Source: Adineta vaga (lineage: Eukaryota; Animalia; Rotifera). Taken from it: a stretch of 64,000 nt of DNA. The stretch covers positions 12,896,001 through 12,960,000 of the forward strand of contig CP075494.1 in the NCBI GenBank assembly GCA_021613535.1, in the 5' to 3' direction. Both the position numbers and the translations under genes were made by a program. The notes under the pieces were generated by a model. The model saw only the letters and a list, made by a program, of their open reading frames with translations. It did not search any database and was not told the DNA's origin. Every line of letters starts with the position of its first letter. The stretch's first letter is position 1. Positions 8,457-22,200 of this stretch are shown here, one piece after another.

Positions 8457-9810
8457 TCACAATAAATCATAAAAATAGTCAAGACCTTGACCACCATCCC
8501 AAATCGCAATACCAACATTCAATTTCATTGCTAATTCTAATCGTTCATGGATGGATTTCAATGTTGGATAGAATATAATTGTTTGTGGTAATTGTTGTTG
8601 TTGTTGTTTAGTTGGACGTGATTGTACAACAGTGACATGTTCATGCACACGAGGATCGTAGATAATCACTGCTGTTGAAAAAGATTTTTTCAAAAAATCC
8701 ACATAATCACGACCAATAATTGGTTTCATTGCATATTGTTGTTGATCAGTTTTTCCTTTTGCATCGGCTCGATCATATCGATAACCATAAAAATTAAGAC
8801 CCAAAAAGACTTTGACTGTACCTTCGATTTCCGGTTTTGAAAATTTCTCCATCGTGTTTTCAACCCATTCTATAGATGAGTCAAATATAAAAACTATATA
8901 TATATATATCATCAATAGATTTCAATAACATACCTAATGGAGCGACTGGACCTGGTTCACGATTAGGAAAATCATATGTCATAATACTAAAACCATCTAA
9001 ATGTTCATATAACATTTCGAAATCATTTTTATCAAATAATTCATCATAAGGTGGAATAGCTAAAATAATTTCTTTCTTCGTATCGTTCACATTTATTTCA
9101 TGAACATGCTCAGCAATATGACTAATGATATGATTTATTGTTGCTTTCGATGCTCCACGAAATTGCATGAGTAATTCAAGAACATAACCATCAAATAAAT
9201 CATTATGTTCAGTAAGAAATTTAGCAAATGTTCCTGCTAATTGTTGTTTTTCATCTTCGGATTCAAATAAAGCATGAATATCATCCGCAGACCATTTTTC
9301 AAAAATAACACGTGGAACAATTCGTACTTTCGGATTATTTCCTTTTAATAGTTCAACCCATTTCTTATCGATATCATGTGTACCTTCGATAACGTATTTC
9401 TCTGCACTCGTACGTTTAATACTTAACCAAACAGGTGAAATATAATCGAATTTTTTCGTAAAGATTTTGGCAACATCATAACCATGAGAATTCCATGGAG
9501 TTACATAAACAAGTGTTGGATGAGTGAATTCTCGTGTTTCTGCACATGTTGAACAATAAGATTCATGATTTTCAAGAATCGATTGGGGATTTGTATTTTC
9601 TGTAACTAGATTACGTTGTAAAACATTGCTTTTTACTGGCGGAGATGCTTGAATTGTTGCAGGTGATGGCGATGCTTGCACAGTTGGTGACGGTGTTGAT
9701 ACAACTTTTTCTGGCGAACGAGTTGATGTTTTACGACTTCCAGGTCCTATTGTTGTTTCAATAGAACATAATAAACAACAAAATATGACGAAAGAGAGAT
9801 AACGTGTCAT
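8457..9810 (-). CDS. CHID1: Chitinase domain-containing protein 1 (GH18-like, SI-CLP), one intron 8870-8933
   Basis: Signal peptide; YVTPWNSHGYDVAKIF..KF.YISPVWL; G.HDID..W; SIMTYD; PGPVAPL.W; LGLNFYG; FYPTLKSI..RL.LA; GQGLDYFYDLL C-terminus. Confidence 0.95.
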
Positions 9811-10293: not shown

Positions 10294-13200
10294 TTATGCA
10301 TTTAATGACGTTGGTAAGGCTGGATTTTGAAGAAAATTCATACGTTGTTTTTGTGTTCGAGATTCTGTTACCTAATGAAAAGATCAACGCATAATTCAAA
10401 GCAAATGAAATCAATTTGTATCTCACGAGTTTTTGTAATTCAGTTAATTCCATTGCTAAAGTTTTGATCGCTTTATTTGCATCTTCCATTTGAAATCGTA
10501 TTAAACGATTATCTTGATCTTCTTTATTTTTTTCTTCTTGATTATCCAAACTACTTGTTCGCATACGTGGAAACCATTCGAGATTTCTTTGCTAAAATAA
10601 AATTGTCTTTTTTTCTCTCAAATATTAAATAACAAAAACAAAACAAACTTCAATCATTTCATGAACATAACTTTCTGGACCGGTATATTCTGTTGGATCT
10701 TTTACATGAATTAAAACCATAAAATAGACATAATTCCACATATTATGAACTTTATGAATGTGATCTTCAAATGTCACATGTTTGTTATCAAATGATTTAC
10801 GATCGAGTCCTAGAAAAGAAAAGGCTTCAAACTCTATTATCATTTAAATCAATTATCTTACCACAAATGAAACATGTGTTCCGAAGTACTTCATCGTTTC
10901 TTTGTTTTTCTGTACGTAAATCAGCAAAATTATCAATAATAACACCAAAAATCAAATTCAATGTAATAATAATAACGATAAAGAAGAACATCATATCATA
11001 AATAACTCGAAAGAAATACAAAGGTTCCTAACACAAAGAAAACACATGTTTCGATAATCTCGGATGGAATCGTTTTCTATTTACTTGACTCGATGGTTGT
11101 CGTAGAACATCACCAATACCACCACCATTTCGTAAACCTTTGTTCAATGTTGTAACAATACACATAAATAATGTATCACAAGCACGTTCAACTTCGTTCT
11201 CTCCTACATCTTCCGGTAATAAAATTGGTACTTGAGTCGCTTGACGAAGATGACCCGTTAATGTATCATTCGAACAATTATCTTTCGTACAATATCGATT
11301 TTCTAGATTTTGTGAAATTGTTGTCGCTAAAAGAAAATCAAATGATTAATGAATGTCTGTTCAAATGATAAAGATAGTAAAAATAACAAAGAAGACAATC
11401 ACGAACAACAACTAGTTTGGCATACATGTCAACGTTATTGTTTTAATCAAATGATTTGTTCGTCGATATCGTAGATAATGTTTTCGTGTTTGAATATTAG
11501 TTAGAAAATCATCACGAAAAAAGACAAAACCCACAAGAGAAAATAGATAAATAACTATTAAAGCTAACATCATAGTTAACATGATTGATTTGCCATTTCG
11601 TGTCACTGATTGTATTACATAAGATAATGTTGAATCTCGAAAAATCATATCGAATAACTGGAAAAATAAAGATTAGGATTAGAAATGTTTTGTTTTTCTT
11701 TTTTTGTTAAGAAATATTCAAAGATAAATAAATAGCAAGAGAAAGCTTATTCGAAATGAATAAATCATATGAGACTTACGAGAGAAAGTTTTATTATCTT
11801 TCAATGTGAAATTTATTGTTTGATCTTCGATTTCCAATGCTTTCGTTTTAACTTCCATAAGGAAATCATCTTGGATAAATAGATAACCGCAAATAGCAAA
11901 GAGATAGATGATAATAACAGCAAAAACAGCTGTTAAAATAACAGATTTAGCATTGCGAACAACACATTGAATCACATTCCACAACGTATCTTCACGATAG
12001 ACAACATCGAGTAACTAAGAAAACAATTATACAACACAAAACGAACAATAAGCATTTCACTTACCAGTAAACTATAGAAAAATTCATGTACACATAAGCC
12101 AAATACACAAAGAGCGAGATAACCCACATGATAAACTAATTGAAAATTTGTTAGATTTTCATAGCGTGATCTGGAAAATGTGCCATTATTTCCCATGAAA
12201 CTAACTAAAAATACTCCTTTATTCAAAACCTACAAACAAAAAGTAGAACATCTTTGATAAGGAGAATTCAATTGATTAGGAATGTTTTTTATACTTGTAT
12301 TGCGCCCATGAACCATAAAGTTGGTCCAAGGCCAATCGAATAAATAGATCTAATAATGGCTGCAACAAAACACATGCGCATCGTTGTTACATTAGTTTTT
12401 ATTAGAATAGCTATTATTGTAAATAGGAATACACTCCAAATAGCTGCTGAAGCACGTGAATCAAGATCTGATGAAAAGAAGAAAAGCAAACCCATAGAAA
12501 ACTTCAATGTTTCAGATTCAATAATACTACCTTTTAAACCTTTGTTAAATGGATAAAAAACAGCGACAAGAATATTGATTAATACTGCAAAATTGAATGA
12601 GATATCACTCCAGAGTGACATTTGAGATGAAAACCAATATAATGTTGGTTGATGACGTAATTTTCTTTGCCATCTCATTTCTTCAAAGATTTCGGGAAAT
12701 TTACCAAAGAAATCTTTGACTTTCGAACCTTGTTGATCTTGTTCACATGTTAGAAAAACTTTCTGTTTCTTTTCATTAGTTAAAAATTCACATAATTGTG
12801 GAACAGGAAAGACAACTAGTTAAAGAGACATTTAAATCAAAACAGAGTAAATCAAAAAAAACAAAACATACTTGGTTCAATAGATCGATCATGTCGAATA
12901 ATTTCAATTTCAGCGGTATGTTTATGATAATAGGATAATGCTTCATCATTTAATGTTCGATGTTTCATAAGAACTTCTAATTCACGATGATGACGTGATA
13001 ACTAAAAATACATTAACATCAAATTGAAATAATTCTTTACAATCGCTTACTTGATACGCAAGAATATACATATTATGGCCAACAGTTTGTGCAACATTAT
13101 CCAGATTATCGTTCTTTTCTTCTTCTTCATGTTTTTCTTCGGAATTTTCGATTTCTTTATGTTCAATTTCTTTTTGTTTACCACGAGCATAAATTTGACA

Positions 13201-16200
13201 TGCAACATCAATCTAGAAAAGAAGACAATAATGAAACATTTGAATATTCTACAAATATTTGATTATCTTTACTAATTGTGAAACAGGATTAATATTTCGA
13301 AGAATACGTTCGGCATTCGTACTATCATCTCGACTTTCCATCACAGCTAAAAGTAATTTCGATGCATTATCCTGAAGAGAAAAAAATGAAGTTATCAATT
13401 TCAATGACTCAGCACATATCAAGCAAAATTACTTTTAATTCTAATACAAGATCATAATTCTTTTGATTTAATGGTGTTATATCATTTAATACAATAGCAA
13501 TAATGATATCGATTCCATTCGATTCATGATTAACAATTGCATCTTGATTGTCTCGACATGGTCCTTGACAATATTCAGTTAATGTATTCAAAGCTTGATT
13601 AATTAATTCAACATTATCTTCATTAATATAATTTCCCAATAGACCAAGTAGACCAGTTTGTGAACCACAGATAGCATCAAGAAATTTTAATGTCTCACAA
13701 ACGAGATTATAATTTGTTTTATTATTATCTTGTAATCGAAGATAATTCTAATAAAACGAAAAACAAAAATGAATTAATAGAGAAGAAGTATAACATGAGA
13801 TGAATACTTGGAATTCAGGATTATGATTTTCACAGAGTAATTGTAAAAATCGTAAGATTGGTTGCATTATACGTAATTCAAAAGCTAGTTTATGACGACG
13901 ATGTTGTAAACTAAATAAAAAAGAGTACAGTATGAATTTCTATGTAGTCTTCGCTGTTATCGAACGAAATAACTTTCGTTGAAGATCTTAGTATCGTTGC
14001 TCTGTACTATTGAATATATCTTACTGAGTATCGAAAGCATCCATTGATCCTGGTGTTGAATTTTTTGGTCGTTCGAATTGTAATGGAATGTCATCAGCAG
14101 TCAATGCAGTCTGCATTGCTTGTGATGAATCCATTTCCGCCATATCTACAAACGAAAAGAAATCGAAACAAATCATTTCCAAAATAGATCTTCTCATTAT
14201 ATGTACTTGTAACATCATCCGTTGGAGGTTCAAGTGAAACTTGTGATGGTACATCAATGGTAAAATTTTCATCGGCAGGTGGAATCAATGATGGTTGTGG
14301 ACCACTTGTTCCACTATTGAACATCAATGATGCATGACCAGATATTGGTGTAAAAATTAAATCATCAAAATCATCAATATCTTCATTGATTTCATTATTG
14401 GCCGACGACATACTTTTCAATGTTTTCTGTGCCACATACATTTTATCATAAAAGACTTGAAAGAATCTTTCCGATGCTGTTTCACATCCATGTAAACGAC
14501 GAAGTATACTTGTCTAAAAGAATCCTATGAAAAGAATATTGAAAAGCAAAACTTCTTACTTGAACTTCGGTATTACCACCTTCGAGTAATGCAATAGCTA
14601 AATGAATACTTTCTTCAAGAATATTCATTGATGATTGACTAATAAATAATTCCACGACAAGATCACTTGCACCTTGTTTATTTAATTCATTTTGTGTTAA
14701 TCGTAATCTTCCAAGAGCATCTTCTTCTAAATAAATACAAACAAAAGAAAGTTTTCTTTTCATGTCGATTATTTAAGATATTTCGCACAAAATCCATTTT
14801 TGCCGAAAAGTGGTAAAGATCTTTTAGTTTTGCATAGTTTTTATGGAATCATTCGATTATGGAAAGAAAATCGAGCAATAACGAGACTATGCCCATAGAC
14901 AGATTCGAACTCTTTCGAATTTATCCCACACAATTCAACTAAATTTTCATACCTTTCAAAGGTTGATGAAGTGATTTTAAATATTGTTTATCATCCGAAA
15001 AATATCGTCGAAGTAATTTCAATCGTAAACTTTGTCCCTAAAATATCGAAATAGAAGATTTGAGAATTTCCAAATCGAATTATTCATTACCATTGTATCA
15101 AATTCATGATTACTTTTTACCATCGATTTTAATGCATGCATGATTCGTAAACAGAGATTTTCATCAGTTTGTACAAGTAAATATTTTGCATGTTGTATAA
15201 ATCTAATTATTAAACATAAATGTCAATTTTAATTCGAATGAAATACTTCGTATTTACTTATAAATTAATGTTCCATAGAGAAGTTTTACTCGACATTCAT
15301 GACTTTCTGGAAATAATGCATAAGGGGCACGAATAACATCGACAAGTACACTCATTTCAGCTTGAATCAATGGATTAAGTCGAATACTAACTTCAGAAAG
15401 ATATTCCTATAGATAGAATGACAAATTAATCCAAAGATTTATGAATGAATGGTATTTATTATACCACAAAACGATCAATGACACGTTTATGTTCTAAATC
15501 GTCGGAATCATCGTAAACATCACCGAGATAATCGCTACTATGCCGTCGGTCAGATGTACTACGACTGGTACGTCGAGAACGGTTTATTGTTTCACTTATT
15601 GAACTATGACTTGAACGAAGAAAATGAAGAAGTCCTCGACGATCCGCTGAAATGAAAATAAAAACAAAAATCCGTATTAACAATTGATTAATAATCAATC
15701 TGAAATCTTTACCAATCAAGGCAATTATATGAATACATCGTTCAATACGTTCACGTTGAATTGTCGTTAACCATGGTACACTTAACAATCGTGTTAAATG
15801 ACTATGTAATGATACAATTGTTGTATTTCGATGCTAAACAAATAAACAAAAGTAGGATAAAGAATAAAAATCTTTCATTTGCTTTTATTCCCAACAAGAA
15901 ACACATAGATAGAAATAAATCACACATGCAAAGGAGAAGTACACGAGGATAATTCATTATATCACACACATTCCAATTACTTACATGAGTTGTACTGTTA
16001 TCTATAATCTGGAATAAGAGATCATATGAAATTTAAAACATGCATAAATATGTGATGGTTCTTTTTTTTCTGTTAGTGAAATTTCTAATCATTCAGCAAG
16101 AATAGTTTTTTTTCTCTCTCTAGATTTTGAATAAAGTACCTCCCAAGAAGCAATTATTGATGGTGCGATCTCAGTTGATCGACTATCATCAAGCATATAC

Positions 16201-19200: not shown

Positions 19201-22200
19201 GGAATTATTTGTAGCTAATACTTTACTTGTATCAAGAATGCCGAGTAGTGTTTGAGTTAGTTTAAGTAAATCTTCGAAACTATAGAATCCAAAGAAGATT
19301 AAACGACGAGCTAAATTAACAACCTAGAAAATAAAAAATAAGATAAAGAAGATTTATCTTTGAAAAAGAGAGTCATACTTCATGAGTGAGTTTATTTTGT
19401 TCACCATCTGCGAATGAATTCGGTTGTTGAACAACAGTTTTTAGATAATCTTCTACAAATTTCATAGTTGATTCAAATTTAATACGATTTTCTTGTTTTT
19501 CAGATGGTTCAAGTGATCCACTGATAGTTTGATCATATCTAGAAAAGAGAATTGCTTTAGTTTCAAGAAAATCATATGTTTTGCTTTTATAAATTGTATA
19601 TTTACTCATTGAGTGAAATCGATGGTTTAACTTGATTCCATAATCGAGCATATTTAATACGTGTAACTTCTTCTTGTGGATCCCGATTAACATGAATATG
19701 AATCATTAGACGACAAAATGCTGCACGTAGATCCGACGGAAGATTTTCACTTTTTATACATCTAAATTAATGAAAAAAGACAAACACTTCAATATACATC
19801 TTAATCGAAATAGAAATTTACGTTAGAATAAGATCAATGGGTAATTCAGTAGATAGATTATCAATAGCGAGATATTGTCGATCGAAACACATATGAGAGA
19901 ATAGATTAAGTTGATATCTATAGAATACAATCCAAAAATAAGAAAAGTTTGAACGAAATTCAATGATTACCTATAATATTCTAAAATATTCTTAAATTCT
20001 TCACGTTTTTTATGTCCAGGTTGATCTCGAATAATTCCAGCCATATATTCAATTGATTCAGATTTTTCATCCCATGTTAATACAACTTCATGGAACATAT
20101 TCTGATGTGAGAAACCAGTTGGCGGACTAATATTATCATCCAAAATTGTATCTTCAATACATGCTTTTAATTCAAGTCTATATTACAAATCAAAATATTC
20201 ATATATGAATGAAAATGAAATCAAATAACAAACTTCGTTCGAATTAGAATATCCGAATTTTTCTCTAAGACCGATTTACAGATCATTTCTTGTGTTCGAG
20301 CAATAGCTTGATTACTTGATACACATAGATCGGATAAATATTCGAGAAATCTTTAACAGAAAAAAAAACATTTATAATATTGAATAATAAAAACGAAAAA
20401 GAAAGAAATCTTACTTGCAATCTCGTTTTTCTCTTAATAATGTTACGAATGTGTCAATTTCTTTTTCTGTGATATGTTTTTCTAATAATTTCTTATTGTT
20501 ATGTAATAATGCAGTGATCGTATCTTCAGCGAGAATATCATAACCAATTTGAGATTGCATAAAAGAGAATTCTTTGGCAATTGTTTCCTGGACAGAGAGG
20601 AGAAAAAGAGAAAACGTTCAATCCATAAGATCACTAAGAAATTTCCTACTTGATTTTTTCGATATTCTTGTTGACAATGTTTAAGTATTCGATAACAAAG
20701 ACGACAAATTGTTTTCATTTGATATGTTGTAGTTGAATAACGTATATCAGCATCTTGTTGTTGTTGTTGAGATGAAACATAATGATCATTACTCGTTGAT
20801 ATAGGTGAATTATTTGAATAAAGATCAGAACCTTTCGAAGAATTAGTATTGAATCGTTCGAGTTCTAAACGTGGTTTTAGTACTCGAAGAACACGAAATA
20901 ACTGAAGTAAACAGACGGATGAAATTCAAATAGAGGAAAAGAAAGAAAATTTACTTGTTTAAGAATATTTTGTTCACGAATTAGTTTTTGTCTTTCACGA
21001 TTCGGTTTTAAGACTTGTACATCAAATGGATCACTACCATTATTTTCTTGACAAGCAAGAAAATAGACAATATCAGTTAATAGTAATATCACTTGTCTAA
21101 AAGAAGATAAAAACCAATCATTTGTATACAAACTATTTGAAATATAAAACTTACTTTCTTTCATTAGCGTGTACATTCATAATTCCAATTTTTTCCCATT
21201 TAGATACTGTTATATCAAAATGCTGTGCAGCATCATTAGCAAAATCCAAATCTCGAACTTCATCCGGCGAAACATGTACTATTTGAAAAGCTTCTTTATC
21301 TTCTTTTAATAAGGCACAACCAATTTTAAATCGTACATTATCATCATCAGGATCTAATTTAATGCTTGTTGAATGAACCCATGTATTCGTACTTATATGT
21401 TGTAAACGTACATATGAACCCCAAGGAACTGGATCTTCATTCCGTGTTATTGTTGTTGGATCGAATTCGAATAGAGATGATATATCATAACCATGTGGAA
21501 TAGGGACAAGTGCAAAGACAGGTGTACTTGATGTGCCACGTAGTTTTTGTCGTGTAGCATCAAATGTTTGATCGAGATCAACTTCAGCAGCAAGATATTG
21601 TCCTGTCGCGAGATGTTTAAAACGAAATAATGAACTCCAATGACCAACACCACCACGACATGGATCCTGTTGAACAACTTCGATTTCCCACAAAGCATTC
21701 GATGAAGTAGCTGATGTTGCTGATGCACGTCCAGTCGCACGTAGAAAAACGACACTTTTCTTTCGATAATTATCACAGGTTAAAAATTTCTCCTGTTCAG
21801 CATGAAATAAACGAACAATATCTCCCTAAAAAACGATCATTAAAGTCATTTGCAAATAAATCAATTTTGTTTTCGTACACTTTTCAAAACTTCATTTGTT
21901 GCTTCATAACATGACACGAATAAAACAATTTTCCAACTCGTTTGAATATGTGAATTCACCTATGAGATGAAAATAGAAAATCAAGTTAAACAATTGATAA
22001 GATTACAAATTCTCATACGTTATATCATGCAGGGTAAAAGATAGAAATTCATGTTATTCTGTCTAGGTTATAAACTGATTATTTACTTTCTAAATAGATC
22101 TTTAACCGATGTATTTAGAAATAAACAAGACCAAACAAAAGCATTTTATTGTTATGCATACGATGAAGAAAACAAAAACAATATATGTATGTATTTTCAG

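Follow-up and report, generated by a model that had tools for sequence, protein, structure and literature searches.

The IP3 receptor gene and its adjacent homologous exons

The DNA analysed here, a stretch of 64,000 nucleotides from the bdelloid rotifer Adineta vaga (hereafter the window, with positions counted from its first letter), lies on contig 5 of an assembly of 100.8 Mb in 6 contigs and carries on its minus strand a gene for an IP3 receptor (IP3R or ITPR). Receptors of this family are the universal channels through which Ca2+ is released from the ER. Exon-by-exon searches of the gene returned the Pfam domains MIR (E 9e-30, window 21154-21693) and RIH_assoc (E 8e-13, window 13412-13639), and the gene also encodes a C-terminal six-helix channel domain with the selectivity-filter motif GGGIGD. 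Two adjacent exons of the channel domain, which we call A and B, each pass the Pfam gathering score for Ion_trans when searched alone, and both match the same profile positions (105-157). In the PDB both exons match the S4-S5 linker and S5 of IP3Rs (residues ~2371-2426 of ITPR2 and their equivalents in ITPR1 and ITPR3). The best E-values to IP3Rs are 1.5e-16 for exon A and 2e-17 for exon B, while those to ryanodine receptors (RyRs) are far weaker at 0.25 and 7e-6, respectively, and the gene is accordingly nearer to IP3R than to RyR. The initial annotation of this DNA, which was made from the sequence alone, had named the gene as an IP3 receptor and had assigned both exons to the S4-S5 linker, S5 and the start of a luminal loop; the domain matches agree with the first assignment and the structural alignment with the second.

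Read along the minus strand, the region around the two exons is organized as follows:

Exon U (upstream, constitutive), 12065..12227, minus strand: end of the S4 region, ...HEFFYSLL; ends in phase 0
Intron U-A, 12015..12064, minus strand: 50 nt, GTAAGT...cttAG; RNA joint 12014->12065
Exon A, 11780..12014, minus strand: 235 nt (3n+1), preceded by ...cttAG and followed by GTAAGT; RNA joints 12014->12065 and 11326->11780
Intron A-B, 11658..11779, minus strand: 122 nt, GTAAGT...tccAG; removed in a minor RNA species
Exon B, 11426..11657, minus strand: 232 nt (3n+1), preceded by ...tccAG and followed by GTATGC
Intron B-D, 11327..11425, minus strand: 99 nt, GTATGC...tttAG; unspliced in B-containing RNA contigs
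Exon D, 11084..11326, minus strand: entered in phase 1; remaining luminal loop, pore helix and GGGIGD selectivity filter; joints 11026->11084 and 11326->11780
S6 exon (pore-lining helix), 10861..11026, minus strand: placed by RNA joints; Pfam Ion_trans positions 203-240

Exon A encodes the S4-S5 linker, S5 and an acidic to neutral luminal tail with N-glycosylation sequons. Exon B encodes a second version of the linker and of S5, followed by a basic luminal tail with a Y-R-R motif. The borders of exon U are given by the RNA joints 12227->12293 and 12014->12065, which were found in three RNA runs, and spliced RNA contigs confirm the U|A and A|D borders. The joint 11780->11657 confirms the acceptor of exon B, whereas its donor is placed by conservation only.

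Both exons are entered in phase 0 and left in phase 1, and each alone keeps the frame into the GGGIGD exon. Frames were checked by script translation of the joined exons: U+A+D and U+B+D are open across the joins, while U+A+B+D (both exons) and U+D (neither exon) run into early stop codons, and the stop caused by double inclusion falls inside exon B. The coordinates, AG/GT borders, phases and translations of the two exons in the initial annotation all match those found here, as does its statement that either exon reaches the GGGIGD exon in frame and that both or neither shift it. In a BLASTP run among all ORF pieces of the gene, exons A and B share 42% identity over 72 amino acids and 52% over a core of 52 amino acids (E 1e-19), in line with the original estimate of about half and well above what chance would give. 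The same self-comparison found no further pair of homologous exons in the gene at E<1e-3; a weak similarity of 8 residues lies near 14900-15250 and does not resemble such a pair.

Conservation of the exon pair and its coding frame

Contig 2 bears a second copy of the gene (the ohnolog), in which both exons recur in unchanged order. Its exons A' (214 nt) and B' (244 nt) differ in length from their counterparts by 21 and 12 nt, yet both are still 3n+1 and have AG/GT borders. Between the two copies the introns are essentially unalignable, while both exons align well. Environmental bdelloid-like loci, which are genomic contigs of environmental assemblies recruited with exon B, extend this comparison, and the order U-A-B-D was found in every bdelloid-like locus spanning the region. 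Fifteen loci were measured in full, namely the window, the ohnolog and 13 environmental bdelloid-like loci, and exons A and B are open with AG/GT borders in 15/15. Across these loci exon A occurs in 8 different lengths (199-238 nt) and exon B in 9 (208-244 nt), every one of which is 3n+1. The constitutive exon U is conserved at 89-96% across bdelloid loci. At one locus (L019:170-862) the U-A intron measures ~690 nt, compared with ~50-90 nt elsewhere, and may contain an insertion upstream of exon A.

None of the 15 loci differs in the first 54 residues of exon A. Over this 54-codon core, dN/dS is 0-0.04 for exon A, with pairwise dS from 0.35 to above 2 (saturation), and 0.04-0.31 for exon B, with dS from 0.39 to >2. 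Exon B evolves several-fold faster than exon A, with unusual substitutions in its core at locus L015. The dN/dS of exon B, which the initial annotation had singled out as a check, points to purifying selection. Each exon retains a different subset of canonical residues: the canonical linker start (VYRE-TL-NVI) survives in exon A, SVTRNG-SI and the canonical S5 end survive in exon B, and among the residues kept in B are IP3R/RyR residues lost in A.

The uniform 3n+1 lengths together with the low dN/dS strongly support translation of exons A and B each in its own frame 0, as judged from the pattern of substitutions. For exon B such translation requires direct entry from a phase-0 exon such as U, and selection on its codons suggests that exon B is used productively. 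A conserved, coding and frame-exclusive pair of exons is strongly supported by these data, and they speak against the idea that exon B is a decaying relic of the tandem duplication, a pseudo-exon that is sometimes mis-spliced. Exon B is indeed rare in RNA, evolves faster than exon A and has a non-consensus donor, as a relic might. However, its frame is open, its borders are AG/GT and its length is 3n+1 in 15 loci whose synonymous sites are saturated and whose flanking introns cannot be aligned; it has been kept in both ohnologs, and the selection data contradict decay, which makes a relic extremely improbable. An exon B that was absent or disrupted in relatives would have counted against the initial annotation, and it was intact in every locus measured. 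Its proposal of an old duplication with both copies still open is likewise upheld by the presence of the pair in the ohnolog and the 13 environmental loci, at dS values reaching saturation.

Within the flanks covered, a single exon of this kind lies between the U-like and D-like exons in 46 non-bdelloid loci, comprising 45 more distant invertebrate loci from metagenomes and the Logan contig L018. Since both ohnologs carry the pair and the outgroup loci have a single exon, the duplication seems to be confined to bdelloids and to predate the split of the two ohnologs. The exon pair is real, apparently specific to bdelloids, and has a mutually exclusive architecture.

Some further differences between the loci were noted. 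In most locus pairs exon A has a lower dS than exon B (e.g. 0.45 vs 0.80 between the ohnologs; L002 and L010-L017 were compared), which suggests either extra constraint on the RNA sequence of exon A or gene conversion between the copies. Same-species runs contain 4 variant positions in intron B-D (11336, 11370, 11381 and 11420) and 0 in the 232-nt exon B; exon A has 2 variants in these runs (11823 and 11874), both at synonymous third positions. The downstream neighbour of the IP3R gene (window 8457-9810, minus strand) encodes a protein with a GH18 (chitinase-like) domain, and this gene is syntenic with the IP3R gene in those environmental bdelloid contigs whose flank extends there (L011-L014, L016 and L017).

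Transcripts and control of splicing

RNA evidence was drawn from Logan contigs of three runs belonging to three studies (X3, X11 and X5), all of which contain spliced contigs; a further run, X9, behaves as DNA. Exon A is the default exon. The U|A joint and the A|D joint (11780->11326, which skips 453 nt) are present in 3/3 RNA runs, and in X5 a single contig of 1721 nt represents the A isoform over seven exons, with no depth on exon B. Of the four junctions by which the initial annotation proposed to recognize the two isoforms, 12065->12014 and 11780->11326 were therefore seen in all three runs; the remaining two, 12065->11657 (U|B) and 11426->11326 (B|D), were not found among the contigs of these runs, an absence that is weak evidence since contigs drop rare variants. 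A rare productive B mRNA may still exist for the same reason. Searches of protein and metagenome collections with exon B, the upstream ORF 12292-12678 and the alignment of B exons yielded no spliced B products, and the matches obtained were genomic read-through ORFs or models ending in the intron after exon U.

Exon B is present in RNA at 6-20% of the depth of neighbouring exons. In X3, a contig of 391 nt with a depth of 6.4 opens with the last 30 nt of exon A and joins the first base of exon B at GT..AG; from there it is contiguous (11297-11657) through all of exon B and the unspliced 99-nt intron B-D and ends in exon D. The A|D junction contig of the same run has a depth of 29.2 and the neighbouring exons reach 30-40. 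In X11, a contig of 249 nt (11355-11603) with a depth of 4.65, compared with ~75, covers part of exon B and of the unspliced intron B-D. Coverage of the other introns of the gene is zero in X3 and X11, and that of intron A-B is zero in X3, so the B signal is specific to RNA and does not stem from DNA contamination. The B-containing RNA found so far is an unproductive A+B form with a retained intron: one joint does enter exon B by splicing, but its donor lies at the end of exon A instead of exon U. Contig breaks at the acceptor of exon A in X3 and X11 were considered as a sign of alternative splicing and dismissed, because over its first 29 nt exon A matches the ohnolog exactly, and this identity by itself creates a branch in a k=31 graph.

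Such transcripts could mean that exon B is a regulatory "poison" cassette, which is included after exon A, shifts the frame and leads to mRNA decay or nuclear retention, thereby tuning the level of IP3R without ever being translated in its own frame. The sole RNA joint into exon B does come from the donor of exon A, its depth in X3 being roughly one fifth of that of A|D, and it is followed by a retained intron and by a stop inside exon B. Against this stands the evolution of the exon itself. Frame-independent nucleotide conservation, the mark of a poison cassette, was not found; the synonymous sites of exon B are at or near saturation while its amino acids are kept in frame 0, with the dN/dS values given above. 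All 9 lengths of exon B are 3n+1 although 3n+2 would poison equally, frame 0 is open in every one of the 15 loci, and canonical IP3R/RyR residues that exon A has lost are retained. A pure poison role for exon B is unlikely on these grounds; the A+B by-product is real, and a poison role could coexist with a coding one.

The lack of a U|B junction among the contigs would also fit translation of exon B from a separate transcript, for example one that starts from a promoter inside the A-B intron and yields a short protein of S5, pore and S6. An in-frame ATG does stand at codon 4 (LLDM...) of many B exons. This ATG is absent from the ohnolog and from several other loci (LLDI... or LLDV...), and the A-B intron lacks RNA coverage in X3. 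The conserved strong acceptor right before codon 1 and the phase-0 entry matching exon U favour splicing from U instead, leaving a separate transcript very unlikely.

Exclusivity of the pair is enforced by the reading frame and not by intron size. Incompatibility of U12 and U2 splice sites was rejected as a mechanism because the four splice sites all follow the GT-AG rule and their donors are of the U2 type. Steric hindrance was rejected as well, since the A-B intron measures 84-158 nt across the loci, compared with 49-65 nt for a typical intron of the gene, and is seen spliced in RNA. The acceptor of exon B is strong, with a long pyrimidine tract before ccAG. Its donor is non-consensus and reads GTATGTCA in most loci, whereas exon A has the consensus donor GTAAGT. 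The first ~20 nt of intron B-D (window 11405-11425) are conserved across bdelloid loci with the consensus GTATGTCAATTTGTCGTTGT, while the rest of the intron is not. A GTATGTCAATTTGTCGTTGT-like element is present in the window and in L002, L010, L014, L016 and L019-L028, and it is expanded to GTT repeats in L011 and L015. From its conservation, the segment 11405-11425 is a candidate splicing control element for the weak donor of exon B. GTTGT and TGT are abundant in intron U-A. Pairing of a docking and a selector RNA was also considered, as the element after the B donor is complementary over 7 nt to the beginning of exon D and the match seems compensatory in the window, but it is mismatched in L002 and L014, and we do not claim such pairing.

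Luminal tails, proposed isoforms and related exon pairs

The luminal tails of the two exons differ by class. Over the 15 loci the A tails have a net charge of -3 to 0 (mean -1.2) and the B tails of +4 to +6 (mean +4.9), so that the contrast between a mixed or acidic A and a basic B, first described for this one gene, extends to the whole set. An N-X-S/T sequon within the exon occurs in the A tails of 14/15 loci and in the B tails of 5/15. The B tails share a conserved Y-R-R-type motif; for the A tails no motif was noted. Luminal loop 3 begins within exons A and B. In mammalian IP3R1 this loop is the docking site of the ER-lumen regulators GRP78, ERp44 and RCN1 (PMC5533947). Exchange of the exons could therefore change gating energetics and luminal regulation, as well as charge and glycosylation.

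The explanation that we consider probable is that a pore-domain exon was duplicated in tandem and kept as two coding, frame-exclusive alternatives, with A as the default and B as a minor or conditional form. The exon for the S4-S5 linker, S5 and the early luminal loop would have been duplicated in the bdelloid lineage before the genome duplication that produced the ohnologs, and both copies would have been retained since then as protein-coding alternatives. With lengths of 3n+1, a functional channel could hold only one of them, as both or neither would lead to a frameshift and a stop, and the frameshifted transcripts are presumably removed by nonsense-mediated decay. Exon A, with its GTAAGT donor, invariant core and glycosylatable acidic tail, would be the default in bulk animals. 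The strong acceptor of exon B may compete with exon D for the donor of exon A, while its own weak donor would go mostly unused in the RNA sampled. In particular cells, stages or states exon B could then be chosen by repression of exon A and activation of the B donor, the latter probably through a cell- or state-specific factor acting on the conserved intronic element, and the product would be a channel that differs in its luminal face and in the belt surrounding the S6 gate. The anatomy, conservation and selection, the A isoform, the A|B splice and the intron retention are shown directly; a productive U-B-D mRNA, its regulation and any functional difference of its product are inferred.

One gene likely makes two channel types, to go by the selection on both exons. 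This central proposal of the initial annotation stands in part: both exons are under purifying selection, but the three sets of RNA contigs show productive splicing for the A isoform only. We are more tentative, and lean slightly against it, about the fuller reading in which a swap of B for A produces a second IP3R channel type in specific cells or states, with an altered gating threshold, altered ER-lumen regulation and possible A/B heterotetramers; the heterotetramers and the altered gating are speculative. If this reading is true, the swap puts another helix S5 and another S4-S5 "belt", the part that keeps the S6 gate shut, into the channel and exchanges an acidic, N-glycosylated luminal segment for a basic and mostly unglycosylated one. 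The B channel would then serve specific cells or states, e.g. eggs, neurons, or desiccation and recovery, and would represent the first pore-domain isoform switch in the IP3R/RyR superfamily. Productive use of exon B would make gating and luminal regulation tunable by splicing. A conserved natural exchange of the S4-S5 linker together with S5 and the proximal luminal loop would offer a matched pair of evolution-tested pore-domain variants for structure-function work.

To our knowledge, all known splice variation of IP3Rs lies in cytosolic domains, and separate genes are regarded as the sole source of functional diversity in the pore region. The vertebrate ITPR1 splice sites SI, SII and SIII are optional cassettes in cytosolic ligand-binding or regulatory domains; they resemble the case described here as alternative splicing of an IP3R, which is tissue-regulated in ITPR1, but they involve no pore-domain swap. 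Transmembrane segments are encoded by mutually exclusive exons in CaV1.2 (exons 8/8a, 21/22 and 31/32) and in NaV channels (exon 5N/5A). There, too, duplicated exons swap a membrane helix or an adjoining loop and change gating or pharmacology, although these channels belong to another family and both of their isoforms are abundant and characterized. For voltage-gated Ca2+ and Na+ channels the exchange of membrane segments through alternative exons is well established, and the IP3R pair adds a case. The locus is also a clear case of frame-enforced exclusivity, with the A+B by-product visible in RNA; aberrant double inclusion of exons 21+22 occurs in CaV1.2 (PMC5059693).

Full-text literature searches found mutually exclusive exons reported neither for an IP3 receptor nor for rotifers, in agreement with the original remark that no description of such a pair was known. 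The closest case in the superfamily is that of insect ryanodine receptors, in which a mutually exclusive exon pair lies in the second SPRY domain (SPRY2) and both forms are found in cDNA (PMC6026295). The authors of that survey, who cite Foskett 2007 for mammalian IP3R splicing, state that such exons were not mapped in IP3Rs (PMC6026295). The insect pair and the rotifer pair belong to the same RyR/IP3R superfamily, and both consist of widely conserved, tandem homologous exons of the mutually exclusive kind. They differ in that the insect pair occupies a cytosolic site and has both forms documented, whereas the rotifer pair is situated in the pore domain.
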